NCBI GenBank assembly: GCA_047495785.1
Contig: JBLDXI010000042.1
Span: 2,294,001 to 2,358,000 of the forward strand
Length of the DNA: 64,000 nucleotides
Direction of reading: 5' to 3'
DNA from: Lepidodermella squamata
Taxonomy: Eukaryota > Animalia > Gastrotricha
Position 1 is the first letter of the stretch. Every line of letters begins with the position of its first letter. The notes beneath the pieces were generated by a model that saw only the letters and a program-made list of their open reading frames with translations, had not been told where the DNA came from and made no database searches. Shown here piece by piece: positions 44,496 to 63,819 of this stretch. A program made the position numbers and the translations under genes.

Positions 44496-45743
44496 TCAAC
44501 GGGCAGGCGGTATAAAAACATAAGGAGATGGCCGAGTGTTGTTATTGCTGTTTGGTATCATATTGACGAAAGAGCTTTGCTGAGCGGGTTCGTACAAATA
44601 AGCCGAACCGCCGGCGTTGCGTTGATTCATAGGGCGAAGAGGAATGTTTTCCGACAATTGTTGCGAATAATGAGCCGCACTGGACTGCTGCTGTTGTTCC
44701 GGCCCTACAACAGCCATTCTGAACGAGTCCATGCTTCGTAGAGTGGCGTTAGTACCCGTTGTGTGCGGACTAACCTGATAGTGCATCGGAATATCGTTGC
44801 CGCTTTGGCTAGGAATCCAAGCGGATGAAGTAAAAACTGCAGGATTAGGCTGGTTAGACATCAAAGGTCTCCGGTCATTGAGCGATTCGGTCGATAAATC
44901 GACGGGAACAGTACCATTGAGCGGGCGGTGAATAGGCTGACTTGGAGGCAAGTAATTACCCTGCCGGGGAGGACCGTTTAACACTCCCTCTCTAGAATCA
45001 GGTCGGAAAGATTCAACGGAAAGAGCATCAACAACGTTCCCTCTTGATTGAGCATTTCTGTAACCAGGTTGACGACTTTTAAATACTTCTGGCTGTTCAA
45101 ATGTAAAACGCTCGCCGCGACTGTCGTACATGCTAGCTTCCAGTCGTAAATCAGGCAAGGACTTGGAGCTGTGTAAACTAGTCGCGGCCGTGACAGCACA
45201 TATAAATGCGCACAGCGACAACAAAATTTGAAGACTAGCTTGTAAAACTTCGACCCAGTAATATGGGAAAATACAATCGATGGTTATTTGATCAGATCTT
45301 GGAATCAGAACTTCGGTGGTCGTTGAAACTGGAAACTGTGATGTTTTGCTGAAGGAAGTCGAGTTTTGGATCTGCGGCTTATTGCCAGCTAAAATAGGGC
45401 CGCACAAAAAGCTGAACCACCAGCTTCTTTCCGAGTCGACAAGACTTAGCACCGATGAATTTTCACGTTGCAGTGAGCCGATTTCCAGGTAAAAGCATAT
45501 GACGAAAATGTTGAATGATAGATATAGCACACTCCACACGACGTAGCAGACAACAAAAACAAATCGCCGCTGTAGTGATCCGAAAACTCCGAGCAGGGCG
45601 AAAATCAGGTTTAGGAAGTTGAAAAGGATTAAAGCATATTGAAATCCGAGAAAGTCAAATACAAGCCGCTGCACCGTTGTGATAAGCTGAACAACACAAA
45701 AGAAGACAAGCGCCACCGAGGCGCCACCAATAGTAGCTGTCAT
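44496..45743 (-). CDS. NKAIN: Na/K-ATPase-interacting protein with long disordered C-tail, intronless CDS
   Basis: VQLITTVQRLVFDFLGFQYALILFNFL...LGVFG..QRR, FNIFVICFYLEIGSL, SWW, CIFPYYWVEVLQASLQILL. Confidence 0.9.
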   Translation of the reverse strand: MTATIGGASVALVFFCVVQLITTVQRLVFDFLGFQYALILFNFLNLIFALLGVFGSLQRRFVFVVCYVVWSVLYLSFNIFVICFYLEIGSLQRENSSVLSLVDSERSWWFSFLCGPILAGNKPQIQNSTSFSKTSQFPVSTTTEVLIPRSDQITIDCIFPYYWVEVLQASLQILLSLCAFICAVTAATSLHSSKSLPDLRLEASMYDSRGERFTFEQPEVFKSRQPGYRNAQSRGNVVDALSVESFRPDSREGVLNGPPRQGNYLPPSQPIHRPLNGTVPVDLSTESLNDRRPLMSNQPNPAVFTSSAWIPSQSGNDIPMHYQVSPHTTGTNATLRSMDSFRMAVVGPEQQQQSSAAHYSQQLSENIPLRPMNQRNAGGSAYLYEPAQQSSFVNMIPNSNNNTRPSPYVFIPPAR

Positions 45744-49410: not shown

Positions 49411-51874
49411 ATGGGACTTCTGTCGGCTGGCGAACCTCTGACATGGGAGGAGACTAAAAAACTTGCCGATTTCATCAAGGAACATGGCATCCAGCAATTT
49501 ATCAACGTCTACAATCGCCATCGCTTGGTGAAGCGGGATTGCCTCCGATGGGGAGACGAGGTCAGTTTTCGATGCAGTTAACCTATCTTCGTGTCTGCGA
49601 ATTCCTTCCCATGTGTAATAATAATTTACCCCCTCTCCAATACGAATGTTCCCAATTATTTGCCTACGGCTGCTTCTTTATTTGAGGCAGTTTTTTTTAC
49701 ATCTATCACGTGCTGTGCAACTGCCCGGCAAATATTTGCTCTCAACTAACGTTGTTATGTAAACTCGTTAACTCGCATAGGCGCGGTTTTCTATACACAC
49801 TTGTAAAACACCGTTTTTCATTCTCGTTTCAGATCGAGTATACACTTGTGCGGTTCGATAGAGTGAACAAAAGAGTCCAAGCTAACCTGCGAGGCTCAGA
49901 ACTACTGCCAATTCTCGCCAAGCTAAAGTATGTTTGCTTAGTTTAAACATCGATGTGTTTGATGTAAATGAGTCGTCCTATTCTAGTGTGAACAAATCTG
50001 ACTGGAAGCCAGAATATGCTGACTACATGTTGGAAGGCACCCCATACCTGCCGTATGGCGGCGGCAGTCGAGATTTCAGCCAGGTTGAGGAGAATATGGC
50101 GCAGCGGCGGCGGTCTGTCGAGGCTTTACTCGGCGAAGATGAGGCTGTGTTGACTATTCCAGCCTTTCCTCGGATCGGGCTTCCCGGTTTCACCTACCCG
50201 GAAGTTGCCCCAACTCCAGAAAATTCCGTTTCGGGTTCGCTGTTTTTCCCGGATCGGGCTATTTTCCCCGAACATCCTCGTTTTGGTCTCTTGACTCAAA
50301 ATATCAGACGGAGAAGGGGGCGGAAAATCGCCATAAATATCCCGATTTTCAAGGATGAAAAAACCCCGAAAAATATGTTTGTCGAAGACCCTGAAAAGTT
50401 CTATGATGAAGAGGCGAAAAAGGCCGCGAAGCCTGATCACGTCTATATGGACGCGATGGGTTTCGGCATGGGCCTATGCTGTCTTCAGGTTACTTTCCAA
50501 GCAGTCGACATCGACGAAGCTCGTTATTTGTATGATCAACTGGCGAATATTTGCCCAATTATGATGGCATTGAGCGCGGGTACTCCGGTTTTACGCGGTG
50601 TTTTGACCGCCACGGACACCCGTTGGCAGGTGATTTCGGCCGCTGTAGATGACCGGACGTTGGAGGAAAGCGGTGAAGAGCCGCAGACATCAGCGAGATT
50701 CCGATTCCCGAAATCGCGCTACGACTCAATCGACAGCTATTTGAGCCCGATGGGCGCGCCATTTTCCGACTTGGACCCGTTCCCGGTCGAGCCTGGCTTC
50801 TACGCGCAGCTGACTCAGGCTGGTGTTGATTGCATCTTAGCCAGCCATATTGCCCATTTATTTTGCCGCGACCCTCTCACGGCGTACCGCGAGAAAATTC
50901 ACCAGAACGACGCGGTCGATACGGACCATTTCGAAAATATCCAGTCGACAAACTGGCAAACGCTTCGTTTCAAGCCACCCCCGCCACAGCCGCAACTCGA
51001 CCCGTTAACCAGCAGCGCGTGTAACCCGGAAAATGACCCGACGAAAACGAACCGCATCGGCTGGCGAGTAGAGTTCAGGCCTATGGAAATTCAATTCACG
51101 GATTTCGAAAACGCGGCTTTGACCGTTTTTGTCGTTCTTTTAACCCGAGTTATCATTTCGTTCCGGCTTAATTTTGTAATTCCGCTCAGTCGCGTTGATG
51201 AGAATTTGCGGCGGGGTCATAAGGCAAATGCGGTGACTGAGGAAAAGTTCTATTTTCGGACAAATGTTTTCACCAAGAATACTCCGCCCGAGGCGAAGCG
51301 GTGTTGTGAAGAGAATATGAATAAGCCGAATCAAACGAGGTGTTGTTCGGCTGAGGAGATTCGAATTGCGAACGAAAACTGCCGAATCGCCGAGTTGACC
51401 ATCGATCAAGTCGTGAATGGCTGTGAAGAGTTCACAGGTTTAGTCCCGCTGGCGAAAAGCTACCTCGCTGCTATCGACTGCGACGTGGAGACGCGGCGAA
51501 AAGTCTCCGTGTATCTCGATCTCATTTCCGGCCGCGCCACCGGTCGCTACAAGACTAACGCCCGGTGGATGCGTGATTTTATCCACTCGCACCCTGACTA
51601 TCACCGCGACTCGCGCGTCTCCGAACTCGTTCAATATGACATGCTAGAGCAAATCACGGCGATTTCGCGGCAACAAGTCACTGATAAGACACTACATCCG
51701 CTCGGGGCTTATTTTCAACGCCAGCCATCATCGGCTAATAACAGCTGCTCGGTCAGCCGGACCGCTTCAGTTTCAGCCGGCAGCGGCATGACAGCAGCAG
51801 CGACTGGCGATACTATGACCCCCGAACAACAAGACGACTTATTAGCTCGTCTAGTAAATGGCGTTTCCACCTGA
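49411..51874 (+). CDS. GCLC: Glutamate-cysteine ligase catalytic subunit; exons 49411-49560, 49833-49927, 49987-51874
   Basis: MGLLSAGEPLTWEETK, LRWGDEIEY, WKPEYADYMLEGTP, YMDAMGFGMGLCCLQVTFQ, HFENIQSTNWQTLRFKPPP, IGWRVEFRPME. Confidence 0.97.
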
Positions 51875-54960: not shown

Positions 54961-57900
54961 TCACACATCTTCATCATTTATCAGCATATCTAACATCATC
55001 TGAGTACTATCGTTTTGAAGCCGGTTGAAATGATGGCCGTCGCGATTGCCGAACGACGCATTGTCAGCACCGCCACGAGGCGGGGACGTGCTCACAGGCC
55101 GATGCCCGCCTCCCGCTCGGTACCACGTTATCACCTTCTTAGTCGCAGTGTAAGAAACGAAAACAACTAGAGCGACCGAGATGGCAGCACTAACGATGAC
55201 AAAAAACACTTTGACACCACTCCAAGAATCCGAGTCACCCGAAGATTCTTGCGAACCTTTCTTCGTGGATATTTCATCATCCAAACAGTTTCTCTCGAAA
55301 CCATGTTCCTTCCCTTCGGGACCGGGGCAGACCTCGGAAAGGAACGATTTCACTGAAAAACGGCCGCAGACAAATGTTTTCGGGAAGCATCTTTGATCTG
55401 TAGTACATCGGATTTGAGTAGTATCGTTACATTTCAGCTCTCGAGTGGACGTAATCACATAATCCTCTTCGAAACATGACCCGGTCAAAATAACGCTTTC
55501 GACGACAATTTCGCGATTCTTTTCTCCCGAAGTGCCTTCGAGCTGCAAGCTAACAAGGCGTTGCGTATTAGCCGCGAAATCTGACGGGCAGTAATTGAAA
55601 GGAATTCGAGTGAAGCTATTGTTGCCTTTTTTCGGGTCGTAATCTGCCGCAGTAACTTGCCATATCTTCCGGCGGCGCGTTACCGAAGACTTGGTGAAAG
55701 ATCCATCGACGCCCTGCTCCTCCAGAACAACAGCAAGATACGACCCAGGCTGTTGGCCGGTTCGAAATTCGTATCGGAGCAAAATATGACAGCTAGCAAG
55801 ATTGCAGGTCTTCTCCATTGCAGTGAACCGGCGAATTTCTGTGGTGGTTATTTCGGCTTGAGACGTTGGTGGGACGGTTGGCTGAGAAAAGGTACAACTT
55901 CTCTTGTCTTTTGCGCTGCTGCTGGAACCAGTGACGTTATTGCAAAATACCAACTCCTCACCACACGCCTCTCGGAGAGGATCTAAAAGCAAACAAAAAA
56001 TGTTATAAATTACTCATTTATGACTTTTTCCCGAAATTTCATGGAATTTCATGTACGCAGCAGCGAACAATGAAGTGTGAGCACTATACATAAGCGAGCT
56101 CGCACACTTAGCTAATGGCTGGAAGCAGTGGCGTGCTTCTGTAACTCAGCGACTTGAGAGCCGGGCTTGCCGAACGGCCGGCCGGTGGGAGCCCTGTCTC
56201 TGGATGTCACATGTCGATCGAGCGCCCCGTGTAAGTACGCCATCAACATGGTCGGCGCGGTGGAGGCCGTGCTGCCCAGGTTGTGTAATGACACGTCAAA
56301 GGTCAGGTCCTAACGGAAGCAGCCTAACGATGTGCGTGGTGAGCGGTACCGGGACAGTGCTTGTGAATGTGCGCCTTAGCCAGCCCATCGGTTCAGACGG
56401 ACGCAAATCTTTTTTTTATTTTTTTATTTTTATTAATTTAATTAAAACAATCTAATGCCCAAAAAATCTTAGGAAACCCATGATTCGCCCTGTTACCTAA
56501 CCCTCGGACCTCTATTTTGAAGTCATATAAAATCCTCACCTTCAATGAATTCCACACATTTTGCGGCAGAGTGGTCCATTCGGCAAGATAGGGCTTTCGG
56601 CGGGCAGTTAGCAGGGCTAGCTGCAACAGGCTTCCCACACTCGGACGAGAAAGCAATTTTAGCCAGGCCGACAGGATGATCTTTGATTGTCGGATAATCA
56701 TGTTCACCGAGTAATCCGCGAACTTTTGAATGCACCAAGGTAATCGTTGTCATAGATTCCGGCAGGAATACAAGTCGAAATTTCTGCATGGTTAAATTTG
56801 CGAAGTTCGTAAAATCAATTTTGCCAACTCGCCACTTCGTGACGGAGGTCATATTCGAGAAAAAGTGATCGTTAAACAGCCAAGTGGCGCGGCCTTCGTC
56901 GCTGAGATGGATGACAGACAGAGCTGTCCCGGGCCAGAGTCGGTATTGAAAATTCATTGTGCAATTATCGGGATTCATATTCTCATACATGTTAGATAGT
57001 AAGGCTCGGCTCTCGAGAAATTCCGGAGCGGCGATAAATTGGAACACAGAATCTGTTACAGCGATAATGCAAGGCTGGCCGTTACAGAGTGACATTTTTT
57101 GAGGCGGCCAGAGCCAATTATCACCTGGGAAATTTATGGTCAAGTCCAAAAATTACTTAAGTTTCACTTGAATTTACCTGTTAACCAGCCGCAAGTGTCA
57201 GGATAACGCATATCGCATGTACCACCGCAAGTCGTTTCGTCGCTGCAATCATGGCAATCACATAAAAAGTCGCACTTGTTCGCCGGGGAGTAGCAGAATT
57301 CCTTCGCATGGCTGCCGTCTTTCGGCGCCAGCATGCTGTCAATAATCTTACTCGGTTCCAAGGCCTGCGCAGAACAAGCCAACTCATCTTGCCTACAACC
57401 AACATCCTGCCGTTCTGGGAATTTAGTATACACCACCCTGCAGCCATGAGAGTAAGACAGGCCCCAAATGCCGACGAATCCATTAACGCCAACCCGTGTA
57501 GTGGCCACCATTCGGTCTTTATCTCGTAATTGAATCCTTATCTGCGGCTTGTGAAAATCCATTCGCATCGGTTCGTCAACCAGCTTTTCAACCTTGGTCA
57601 TGTGGTGATTGAACATTTTTAGTTCAATCTGCTCACGAATCCAGCCATTTGCAGCAACTTGTTCCAATTCCTCGGCGAAAGGCATCGCCGATTTTGAAGC
57701 GGTATCGATTACACTGAAGTCAACGTCTAAACCCGGTGGGACGTAGTAGAAAAATCGAAGCCAGCACTTCGTCGTCACGTCATTTATATCGCGAATCGCG
57801 TCGATTTCAGGTAAGGAAAAGAGAAAACTGTCATCAGCCTGGCGCAATTTATCGCTTAAATCGACGACAAGAGGCGCTCCATTCGGAAAATCGGGTTGGT

Positions 57901-58976
57901 CTGTAACTGAGGGCAGTATCACGCCGTTTGGCAGTTCGGGAACTGGGGGGATGAAGCCGTCTAATCTTTGAAAATTTGATTGGCCATAGCCGACTTTTGG
58001 AATGATTCGCCCTTCAATAGGGTTCCAGCCGTTAGCAATGTTGCAACCATTCGGGAACATGCAGTGTTCTGTGCGGTGGCCACACCCGGCTGTTTCTGGC
58101 TTCTCATCCGACGCATCCCCGCAATCGTCAACAAAATCGCAAACTGCAGCCCAAGTAATCTTTTTACCATTGACGCATGTAAAAGCTGTAGTAGGAGCCG
58201 CGTCCGGTGCCAGGTAATCACAAAACTCCCATGAAACGTTGCCCAGCGCCTTTCTACCCGTGAAATTCGACCACTGTTCAGCTTGAATAACCAGGTTGAA
58301 ATCGCGGTACGCACCAATTCTAGCCACAAGATCAAGCTCGCCTTTGTAAGAGCCGTGGATTGAAGCCACGAGTCGCTCATCTACCACTGTTTTGTCATTT
58401 TTCTTCCGGAGAAAAACCTTCCAATGACCGATGTTGCTAGATCCTTCGGAGGCCACGCGAACTCGAACTTGGCATTGAGGAGCGACTTCTTGAATAACCT
58501 CACTCTCAAGCTCAACCCGCCCACTCTCGTCCTTTTTTATGTCGTTGTTTTTGTTAACGCAAAGCATGCAATTGCCGTAGCCGAATTCGGCTGCTTCGCA
58601 CGCAACCCATTCTTTGATTTCTTTGCAAGTTTCAAATTTGAATGCAGATGATACGGTAACTTTAAAGCCGCAATCTGTAAATGCTGCGTAAGTTGTGCCA
58701 TTTGCAGCACAATTTCTAACGCCGGCTTTTACCGATGGCCTTTTGGGGTCCGGTTTCTGGGTTGTTTGAGGTGACGTTATTTGTTGTGTAGTAGTGGGAA
58801 CTGTTGCTGGCGGGGCAGTTGGCTGAGGAGCGGTACCTTTTGTTTCTGGAAAATAATCAATTAAATTGTTTACTCAACTTGGTTTTATTCAGCTCACCGT
58901 TTTGGCTGGAAGTTACTTTGAAAGACAGAGAAATGAGAAAGATTGTCAGAAGTTTTTGAAGATTGCCTGGTCGCAT
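54961..58976 (-). CDS. Type-I membrane protein with divergent MAM and LDL-receptor class A domains (MALRD1/MAMDC4-like); exons 58976-58898, 58845-57178, 57124-56540, 55982-54961
   Basis: Signal peptide MRPGNLQKLLTIFLISLSFKVTSS, Thr/Pro linker, LDLa repeats (FTCVNGK...VCDFVDDCGDASDE; KCDFLCDCHDCSDETTCG), MAM-like CWLRFFYY and CTMNFQYRL, TM helix VFFVIVSAAISVALVVFVSY. Phase-1 introns. Confidence 0.82.
56117..56412 (+). ncRNA. RN7SL: Signal recognition particle RNA (7SL), ~296 nt, antisense within an intron of the MAM/LDLa gene
   Basis: Colinear with metazoan 7SL: 5' GGCTGGAAG..TGGC..GCTTCTGTAA (Alu domain UGU), TAAG..GCCATCAACATGG, helix 6 gcgcggt-GGAG-gccgtgc, CAGGTTG, helix 8 CAGG-tcc..gga-AGCAG, GTAccGGGA, CAGCCC, and a Pol III T-run at 56410. 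Confidence 0.93.
56410..56417 (+). terminator. Pol III oligo-T terminator of the SRP RNA gene
   Basis: T8 immediately after the 7SL 3' end (aaatc). Confidence 0.85.
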
Positions 58977-62350: not shown

Positions 62351-63819
62351 ATGATGCCGATTTTTCTATTACTGCTCCTGGCAACCGTTTTGCCGCAATC
62401 AACGCGGGCCCTCGACTGCACAGCACCAGCTTACAATTTAGCCGACCGAGCTACCTTACGGCGGTTTGTTGAACAAGCTGATTTGGTCGTAGTCGGCACT
62501 GTATTAGACCTCAACCGGAAAATGATACCGTTCGAGATGGGCCCGGATGAAATGTCGTCAGGTCGCGAAGGCCGCGTCCTAATTCGTCGCGTTTTCAAGG
62601 GCCAACAATTTTTATCGGCTCGTTTCAACGAATTAGCTACAACCGCGCGAATTCAGTCGCGAATTCCTACGATTATTCTAGGCTCAGATGCTGAGGGCAT
62701 CTTACAGGTTCGAGGCAGAACAACGTCGCCTGAGGACGATTCCTACGCGATAGACGACGCGACTCCGAGCAGTGATTTAGCCGCGCCGTTTCGGAAGGAA
62801 AAGCAAGCCCCGGTCCAAATAAGTAACAACGCGATAGTCGACGAATTTGTCGCGTATCTACGCGAAGGTTTGCTCAACGTCAACGGGTTCCACTCGCCCG
62901 GTATTTGCAACTCGGCGGCTGAGCGATTTGATACACGAATTTTGCTGCTGAAATTGCTGCCGGATAAATCAGCGCGGGGTAAGGCGATGAGGACGTCGTT
63001 TCGTTGGCGCCTCGTAGCAGCGCCTGTCCCACTGAATTGGCGAACTATTCAAGCGATTGAAGGCGTTGTTTCTGCAAACCAAGCTCGCCCACCGCCGAGT
63101 GGAAATTTGATATCAGCAACCGCGGCTCCAGTGACTACCCGGAAAATGGCTCCTACTACGCCTAGATGGACCTACGGCAAGTCGTCTACTGTACCAATCA
63201 TTCAATCAGTAAGGCCGACTTGGACTATGACCGCAGCGAAATCGACGACTACGCCAGCCACTCGGCGGCCAGCAGTGACTTGTGCCGAATATCGCTGCAC
63301 GGGGCCGGGCGAGGTTTGCACAATGTTCCAGGGTGTTCCTCGTTGCGAATGTCCCAACAATTGCGCAAGCCCTTCAGTGCCAGACTCATCCGGGGCAGAT
63401 ATCAGCGAAACGCCTACCAGTGTTTGCGGGACAGATGGTCAAACTTATGAGTCGATGTGCCATCTTGCCAAGGTTAAACTTAATTTATCCGATTTTCAAT
63501 TATTTTATTATTATTATCGCTTCACAGGCTCAGTGCGAGACCAAGTCGCGAACTTTACGGTTGAAACACACCGGAAACTGCGATGTGCCTGATCCGTGTT
63601 TGAATATGAATTGCACGTACGGTGCGATTTGCGAGCGTTCGCTAGACGGGCTCACCTCGAGGTGTATCTGCCCGCGCCAATGCCCTACCCCAGGATCCCC
63701 GGGTGCCAATGTCGCACTCTGCGGCAGCGACGGTCGTGATTATACGAGTCTTTGCCATCTTCGCAAATCCGCGTGCGAAGGCATGCGAGATGTCCAACCT
63801 GCTCGGCTTGGGAAGTGCA
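62351..63819 (+). CDS. AGRN: Agrin, 5' part (signal peptide, NtA domain, follistatin/Kazal repeats); exons 62351-63472, 63528-63819; continues beyond the window
   Basis: EQADLVVVGTV...GRVLIRRVFKG...VNGFHSPGICNS...DTRILLL (NtA), VCGTDGQTYESMCHL, DPCLNMNCTYGAICERSLDGLTSRCICP, LCGSDGRDYTSLCHL. Confidence 0.9.

Follow-up and report, generated by a model that had tools for sequence, protein, structure and literature searches.

The locus described here raises the question of what becomes of an animal's signal recognition particle (SRP) when helix 8 of its 7SL RNA carries a UAAC tetraloop instead of GNRA. The gene is found in the window, that is, the whole stretch of 64,000 nucleotides of Lepidodermella squamata DNA that was analyzed. 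In the S domain of SRP RNA, two loop adenosines pair with each other, the third residue of the helix 6 loop and the fourth residue of the GNRA loop in helix 8, and SRP19 promotes this clamp. The clamp residues of human 7SL are numbered A149 and A201; no relevant description of the A149-A201 pairing geometry came out of a literature search.

Eukarya and Archaea are said to conserve the position-4 adenosine of the helix 8 loop universally, and GRRA is present in 81 of 81 archaeal RNAs surveyed (PMC2905702). An animal with C at position 4 truly departs from such statements. The change from A to C is not obviously neutral because of the role and the conservation described for this adenosine. Two papers on the Lepidodermella genome and its small RNAs make no mention of 7SL or SRP.

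The 7SL gene and its helix 8 loop

A cmscan search of the 64-kb window shows a sole Rfam match, Metazoa_SRP (RF00017) at positions 56118–56412 of the plus strand, with a score of 172.7 bits (gathering score 70) and an E-value = 2.7e-45. The match spans model positions 1–299 of 299 and represents a full-length RNA of 295 nt. The features of the gene are as follows.

56118–56412, plus strand: 7SL/SRP RNA gene, full length (Rfam RF00017, 172.7 bits, model 1–299)
56118–56161, plus strand: 5′ part of the Alu domain (helices 2–4), with the UGUAA motif at 56140–56144 (cmscan, model 1–44, posterior probability '*')
56244–56283, plus strand: helix 6, the primary site of SRP19, with the GGAG loop at 56262–56265 (cmscan structure line, MFE fold, variant letters in the sequencing runs X1, X10 and X11 described below)
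56291–56335, plus strand: helix 8, the site of the SRP54 M-domain, containing the symmetric loop CAGG/AGCA and, at its apex, the 3-bp stem UCC/GGA (cmscan; 21 flanking bases as in E. coli ffs)
56311–56314, plus strand: apical tetraloop UAAC replacing GNRA (sequence, cmscan; no alternative letter in four runs)
56085–56094, plus strand: TATA-like box, sequence TATACATAAG, roughly −33 to −24 from the 7SL start, a putative RNA polymerase III promoter element (read in the sequence)
56410–56417, plus strand: T8 run, RNA polymerase III terminator (read in the sequence; the cmscan match ends within the run)

The UGUNR motif of the Alu domain is present as UGUAA, and helices 2–4 align with high posterior probability. 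The long helix 5 is found between the Alu and S-domain parts of the cmscan alignment. Helix 6 shows a GNAR loop, GGAG, with A at position 3 in both the cmscan alignment and the MFE fold. The SRP54 M-domain motif of helix 8 is also present, as CAGG at 56304–56307 and AGCAG at 56318–56322. The sequence TATACATAAG is likely to act as the upstream RNA polymerase III promoter element, to judge from its position and letters, and TATAAA-type boxes are situated at a matching distance in the upstream ends of two other 7SL copies (run X1 contigs). A preliminary description of this DNA had noted intact stems, an Alu domain and a terminator, all of which are borne out by the full-length RF00017 match and the T8 run. 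The sequence at 56118–56412 is a genuine and probably functional 7SL gene.

The apex of helix 8, the most conserved hairpin of the RNA, reads AGGTCAGGTCC-TAAC-GGAAGCAGCC at positions 56300–56324, with the loop letters at 56311–56314; the RNA sequence is UCAGG-UCC-UAAC-GGA-AGCAG. The segment UCC-UAAC-GGA aligns to the RF00017 consensus gcg-GAAA-cgc with posterior probability '*' throughout, and the mismatches to the consensus loop GAAA are the first and fourth positions. Thus a GNRA loop with A at position 4, a feature of helix 8 in RF00017, is absent and the loop is UAAC. The MFE fold reproduces both the helix 6 and the helix 8 hairpins of the cmscan alignment. The UAAC loop and the GGAG loop of helix 6 had both been reported before, and sequence and cmscan place the UAAC loop exactly where the preliminary description had it.

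C-UAAC-G agrees in sequence with the UMAC class of tetraloops, whose definition is the sequence U-(A/C)-A-C with a Watson-Crick closing pair (PMC12550061). Although not GNRA in sequence, UMAC loops form motifs resembling GNRA in ribosomes and in phage boxB RNA (PMC12550061). Nearest-neighbor energies put UAAC 0.9 kcal/mol below GGAA in stability and close to the median of all tetraloops, and so speak neither for nor against a look-alike loop; the nearest-neighbor parameters (ViennaRNA) contain no special-tetraloop bonus for C-UAAC-G.

The neighborhood of the gene displays several other features. Two direct-repeat units of 12 nt that differ by one mismatch, CAAAAAATGTTA at 55994–56005 and CAAAAAATCTTA at 56460–56471, are spaced 466 bases apart and bracket the 7SL gene together with its promoter and terminator. 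They could be the footprint of a duplication or an insertion, or a chance occurrence. There is also a short tandem-like repeat, GAAATTTCATG GAATTTCATG, at 56034–56055, 60–80 bases upstream of the 7SL start. ARAGORN detected no tRNA genes in the whole window (1–64000), hence none upstream of the 7SL gene. On each side the gene is flanked by an open reading frame on the minus strand. Long exon-like open reading frames with Pfam matches are found at 44496–45743 (minus strand), 49934–51874 (plus strand), 57164–58567 (minus strand) and 62351–63592 (plus strand). The matches are to NKAIN, to glutamate-cysteine ligase (E-value = 4e-152) and, weakly, to LDL-receptor class A and Kazal/agrin N-terminal domains, some of these weak matches being under the Pfam score cut-off.

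Copies of the gene in public sequencing runs

Contigs of four public runs (X1, X10, X2 and X11) were aligned to positions 55800–56700, with a threshold of 10 reads in 100 for the listing of variants. X2 and X11 are metatranscriptomes and X1 is DNA-like, X10 being of unspecified kind. Contigs of this type cannot show transcript ends, strand or level, and may drop rare variants.

Whether reads support TAAC had been named beforehand as a test of the loop. At positions 56296–56326 the contigs of the four runs display no letter other than that of the window at the threshold of 10 in 100, and TAAC is not an assembly error since all four agree across this segment. No GNRA version of the helix 8 loop is seen in these contigs either, the dominant forms all being TAAC. 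The loop change is fixed among the 7SL copies seen.

Run X1 covers both flanks of the gene without a difference and therefore contains the locus of the window. In the same run, which has many contigs over the gene, six different upstream continuations meet the 7SL body, at positions 56036, 56063, 56087, 56112, 56114 and 56116; thus the genome has several 7SL copies. The other copies with differing upstream flanks number at least six in X1. Some of them match the window copy for as many as about 80 upstream bases, and others share upstream only a box of the TATAAA type at about −30. Contigs of X2 and X11 are confined to within the 7SL gene, which is a pattern expected of transcripts, and X10 contigs also cover the gene.

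The window copy departs from the dominant contigs at six positions: 56175, 56179, 56256, 56261, 56271 and 56284. Positions 56256 and 56271 form a pair in helix 6 that is C-G in the window copy and U-A in the dominant copies, a compensatory exchange. Position 56261 belongs to the pair closing the GGAG loop, with U-G in the window copy and C-G in the others. The same two states, U-G and C-G respectively, are found at 56284 in a small hairpin between helices 6 and 8 (cmscan structure line). In helix 5, position 56175 participates in a C-G pair in the window copy and a U-G pair in the others. Only 56179, an internal-loop position, lies outside a base pair.

These six differences could mean that the window copy is a silent or decaying paralogue and that the dominant copies, which also carry UAAC, do the work. 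The failure of the window copy's own letters at 56175 and 56179 to appear in the assembled contigs of the DNA-like run X1 points the same way. However, pairing is kept by all but one of the differences, the TATA-like box and the terminator are intact in the window copy, and an X2 RNA-library contig carries the letters of the window copy at five of the six distinguishing places, the exception being 56284. We therefore regard a silent or decaying state of this copy as rather unlikely. Few as the changes are, their pattern suits a paralogue under structural constraint better than a decaying pseudogene.

The UAAC loop, SRP19 and the S domain

The explanation that we consider probable, with some reserve, is that the window holds a working copy of a multi-copy 7SL family, that UAAC is found in every detectable copy, and that the loop has a GNRA-like fold with SRP19 still holding the helix tips. 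It starts from what is observed, namely the identity of the gene, the sequence of the loop, its presence in RNA-library contigs as in all detectable copies, and the use that bacteria naturally make of the same hairpin. The apical loop of helix 8 would have become UAAC in this lineage, in all detectable copies, and the S-domain elements that were checked are kept, i.e. the GNAR loop of helix 6 (SRP19) and the helix 8 symmetric loop (SRP54). As a loop of the UMAC/URRC type, UAAC may take a GNRA-like fold in three dimensions. SRP19, presumably retained, would go on clamping the helix 6 and helix 8 tips to each other, and the A-A cross-loop pair would give way to an A-C contact or would simply be lost.

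A change like this could reach fixation because the eukaryotic tetraloop no longer tethers the receptor, the job that constrains the loop of E. coli; relaxed constraint and neutrality of the change are thereby presumed. The E. coli tetraloop tethers FtsY, and its mutants lose 20- to 200-fold activity (PMC6781444). In human SRP a motif of the receptor protein took over this tethering role (PMC6781444). The human 7SL loop mutants UUCG, GUAA and GUCG minimally affect stimulation of the SRP-SR GTPases in vitro, and preprolactin targeting is not significantly impaired by the same mutants (PMC6781444). The human mutants being tolerated, the eukaryotic loop is therefore probably under weaker constraint than its conservation suggests.

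The S domain might instead have been rewired, as the preliminary description proposed: loss of the A-A clamp would have forced a change in SRP19 or made SRP19 dispensable, and assembly would differ in this lineage. An adenosine called universal in Eukarya and Archaea is, after all, C in all copies detected here, and Archaea provide a precedent in that SRP19 can be dispensable (PMC2905702). However, helix 6 retains GGAG with the clamp adenosine, and the compensatory pair found in helix 6 between copies would be unexpected had SRP19 binding been lost. UMAC loops, moreover, mimic GNRA (PMC12550061), and even UUCG at this position leaves human SRP working in vitro (PMC6781444). With helix 6 intact and carrying a compensatory pair, with UMAC mimicry and with the human mutants tolerated, the proposal of a rewired S domain with a changed or lost SRP19 is unsupported, and we hold such rewiring to be quite unlikely. 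Loss or co-evolution of SRP19 in this animal likewise appears unlikely from the analysis. We give a low probability to the A-A clamp having been replaced in one metazoan lineage by an A-C contact or by none, with SRP19 having co-evolved or become less necessary; if true, nature would here have run an experiment on how assembly of the S domain is enforced. Most likely, UAAC is a tolerated look-alike loop rather than the mark of a rebuilt machine.

It is very improbable that the physiologically relevant gene is some rare canonical copy, with GNRA, at another place in the genome. A single copy among many could escape, as rare variants drop out of contigs at a threshold of 10 reads in 100, but TAAC is present in every RNA-library contig aligned (X2, X11) and in X10.

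Bacterial hairpins and comparison with known systems

The UAAC loop is flanked by 11 bases on its 5′ side and 10 on its 3′ side that recur unchanged in ffs of E. coli MG1655, which was fetched by coordinates and aligned. An identity of the 21 flanking nucleotides with E. coli 4.5S RNA had been claimed in the first account of this locus, and the claim holds. With BLASTN the hairpin matched no E. coli genome, the split 11 + 10 identity being too short. An exact scan with the 25-mer that includes TAAC, over one genome per bacterial and archaeal species, showed hits in two planctomycete MAGs. Both matches form the apex of a Bacteria_small_SRP RNA (RF00169) that scores above the gathering score:

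L001, 3715–3810, minus strand: planctomycete small SRP RNA with the identical 25-nt UAAC apex (exact scan, RF00169)
L002, 1971–2067, minus strand: planctomycete small SRP RNA with the identical 25-nt UAAC apex (exact scan, RF00169)

URRC is a widespread bacterial alternative to GNRA in SRP RNA (PMC4091067). This report and the two planctomycete RNAs agree with the earlier remark that URRC loops occur in some bacterial SRP RNAs. Because the hairpin is found at the apex of planctomycete small SRP RNAs and URRC is widespread in bacteria, the UAAC hairpin is, on sequence grounds, a naturally used, working SRP54/Ffh-binding element in bacteria. The RNA of the window is of the 295-nt metazoan type and not the hairpin of about 100 nt, with helix 8 and part of helix 5 only, that characterizes RF00169. 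The resemblance of its stem to E. coli is best explained by convergence on an SRP54-binding motif under strong constraint, because all other domains of the RNA are metazoan; convergence was also the original reading and is favored here for this reason. A sequencing or assembly artefact, or bacterial contamination supplying the E. coli-like hairpin, might be suspected from the identity to bacterial sequences but is effectively refuted by the cmscan match and the run contigs, as the 7SL around the hairpin is complete and metazoan, Alu domain and helix 6 included, four independent runs concur on TAAC, and eukaryotic genes flank the locus.

Metagenomes were scanned for eukaryote-type S domains with a U..C loop, using the pattern GGAG, gap, CAGG NNN TNRC NNN AGCAG, gap, GTGAAT. 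The scan gave 65 stretches against an estimate of tens of chance matches, and a handful of these have all three stem pairs. Six loci, four with full stems and two others, were submitted to cmscan and none is an SRP RNA; they are chance hits. Three of these loci come from human-gut metagenome assemblies. The scan missed even L. squamata itself and is therefore uninformative on relatives.

A healthy animal whose visible 7SL copies have C at position 4 constitutes a natural counter-example to the universal A. This also agrees with the loss of receptor tethering by the mammalian tetraloop in vitro, and offers a ready-made sequence for testing the weight of the A-A clamp in SRP19-driven assembly. 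SRP RNA finders that require a GNRA motif would miss or down-score UAAC genes. The scope is modest and the interest that of specialists, the picture of SRP function being unchanged.

Compared with metazoan 7SL (RF00017), the RNA has in common the Alu UGUAA motif, helix 5, the GGAG (GNAR) loop of helix 6, CAGG/AGCA in helix 8 and the T-run terminator; it differs in the helix 8 loop, which is UAAC versus the GAAA consensus, at positions 1 and 4. With the planctomycete RF00169 RNAs it shares an identical 25-nt apical hairpin that includes UAAC. Unlike the RNA of the window, the bacterial RF00169 RNAs are about 97 nt long and are without helix 6, Alu domain and SRP19, and the role of the bacterial loop is FtsY tethering, which is reported lost in mammalian SRP. 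The 11 + 10 bases flanking the loop are common to E. coli 4.5S RNA (ffs), whereas the E. coli loop is GGAA and the remainder of that RNA is unrelated in length and domains. With respect to the UMAC/UNAC tetraloops of rRNA and of phage phi21 boxB, UAAC fits U-M-A-C by sequence.
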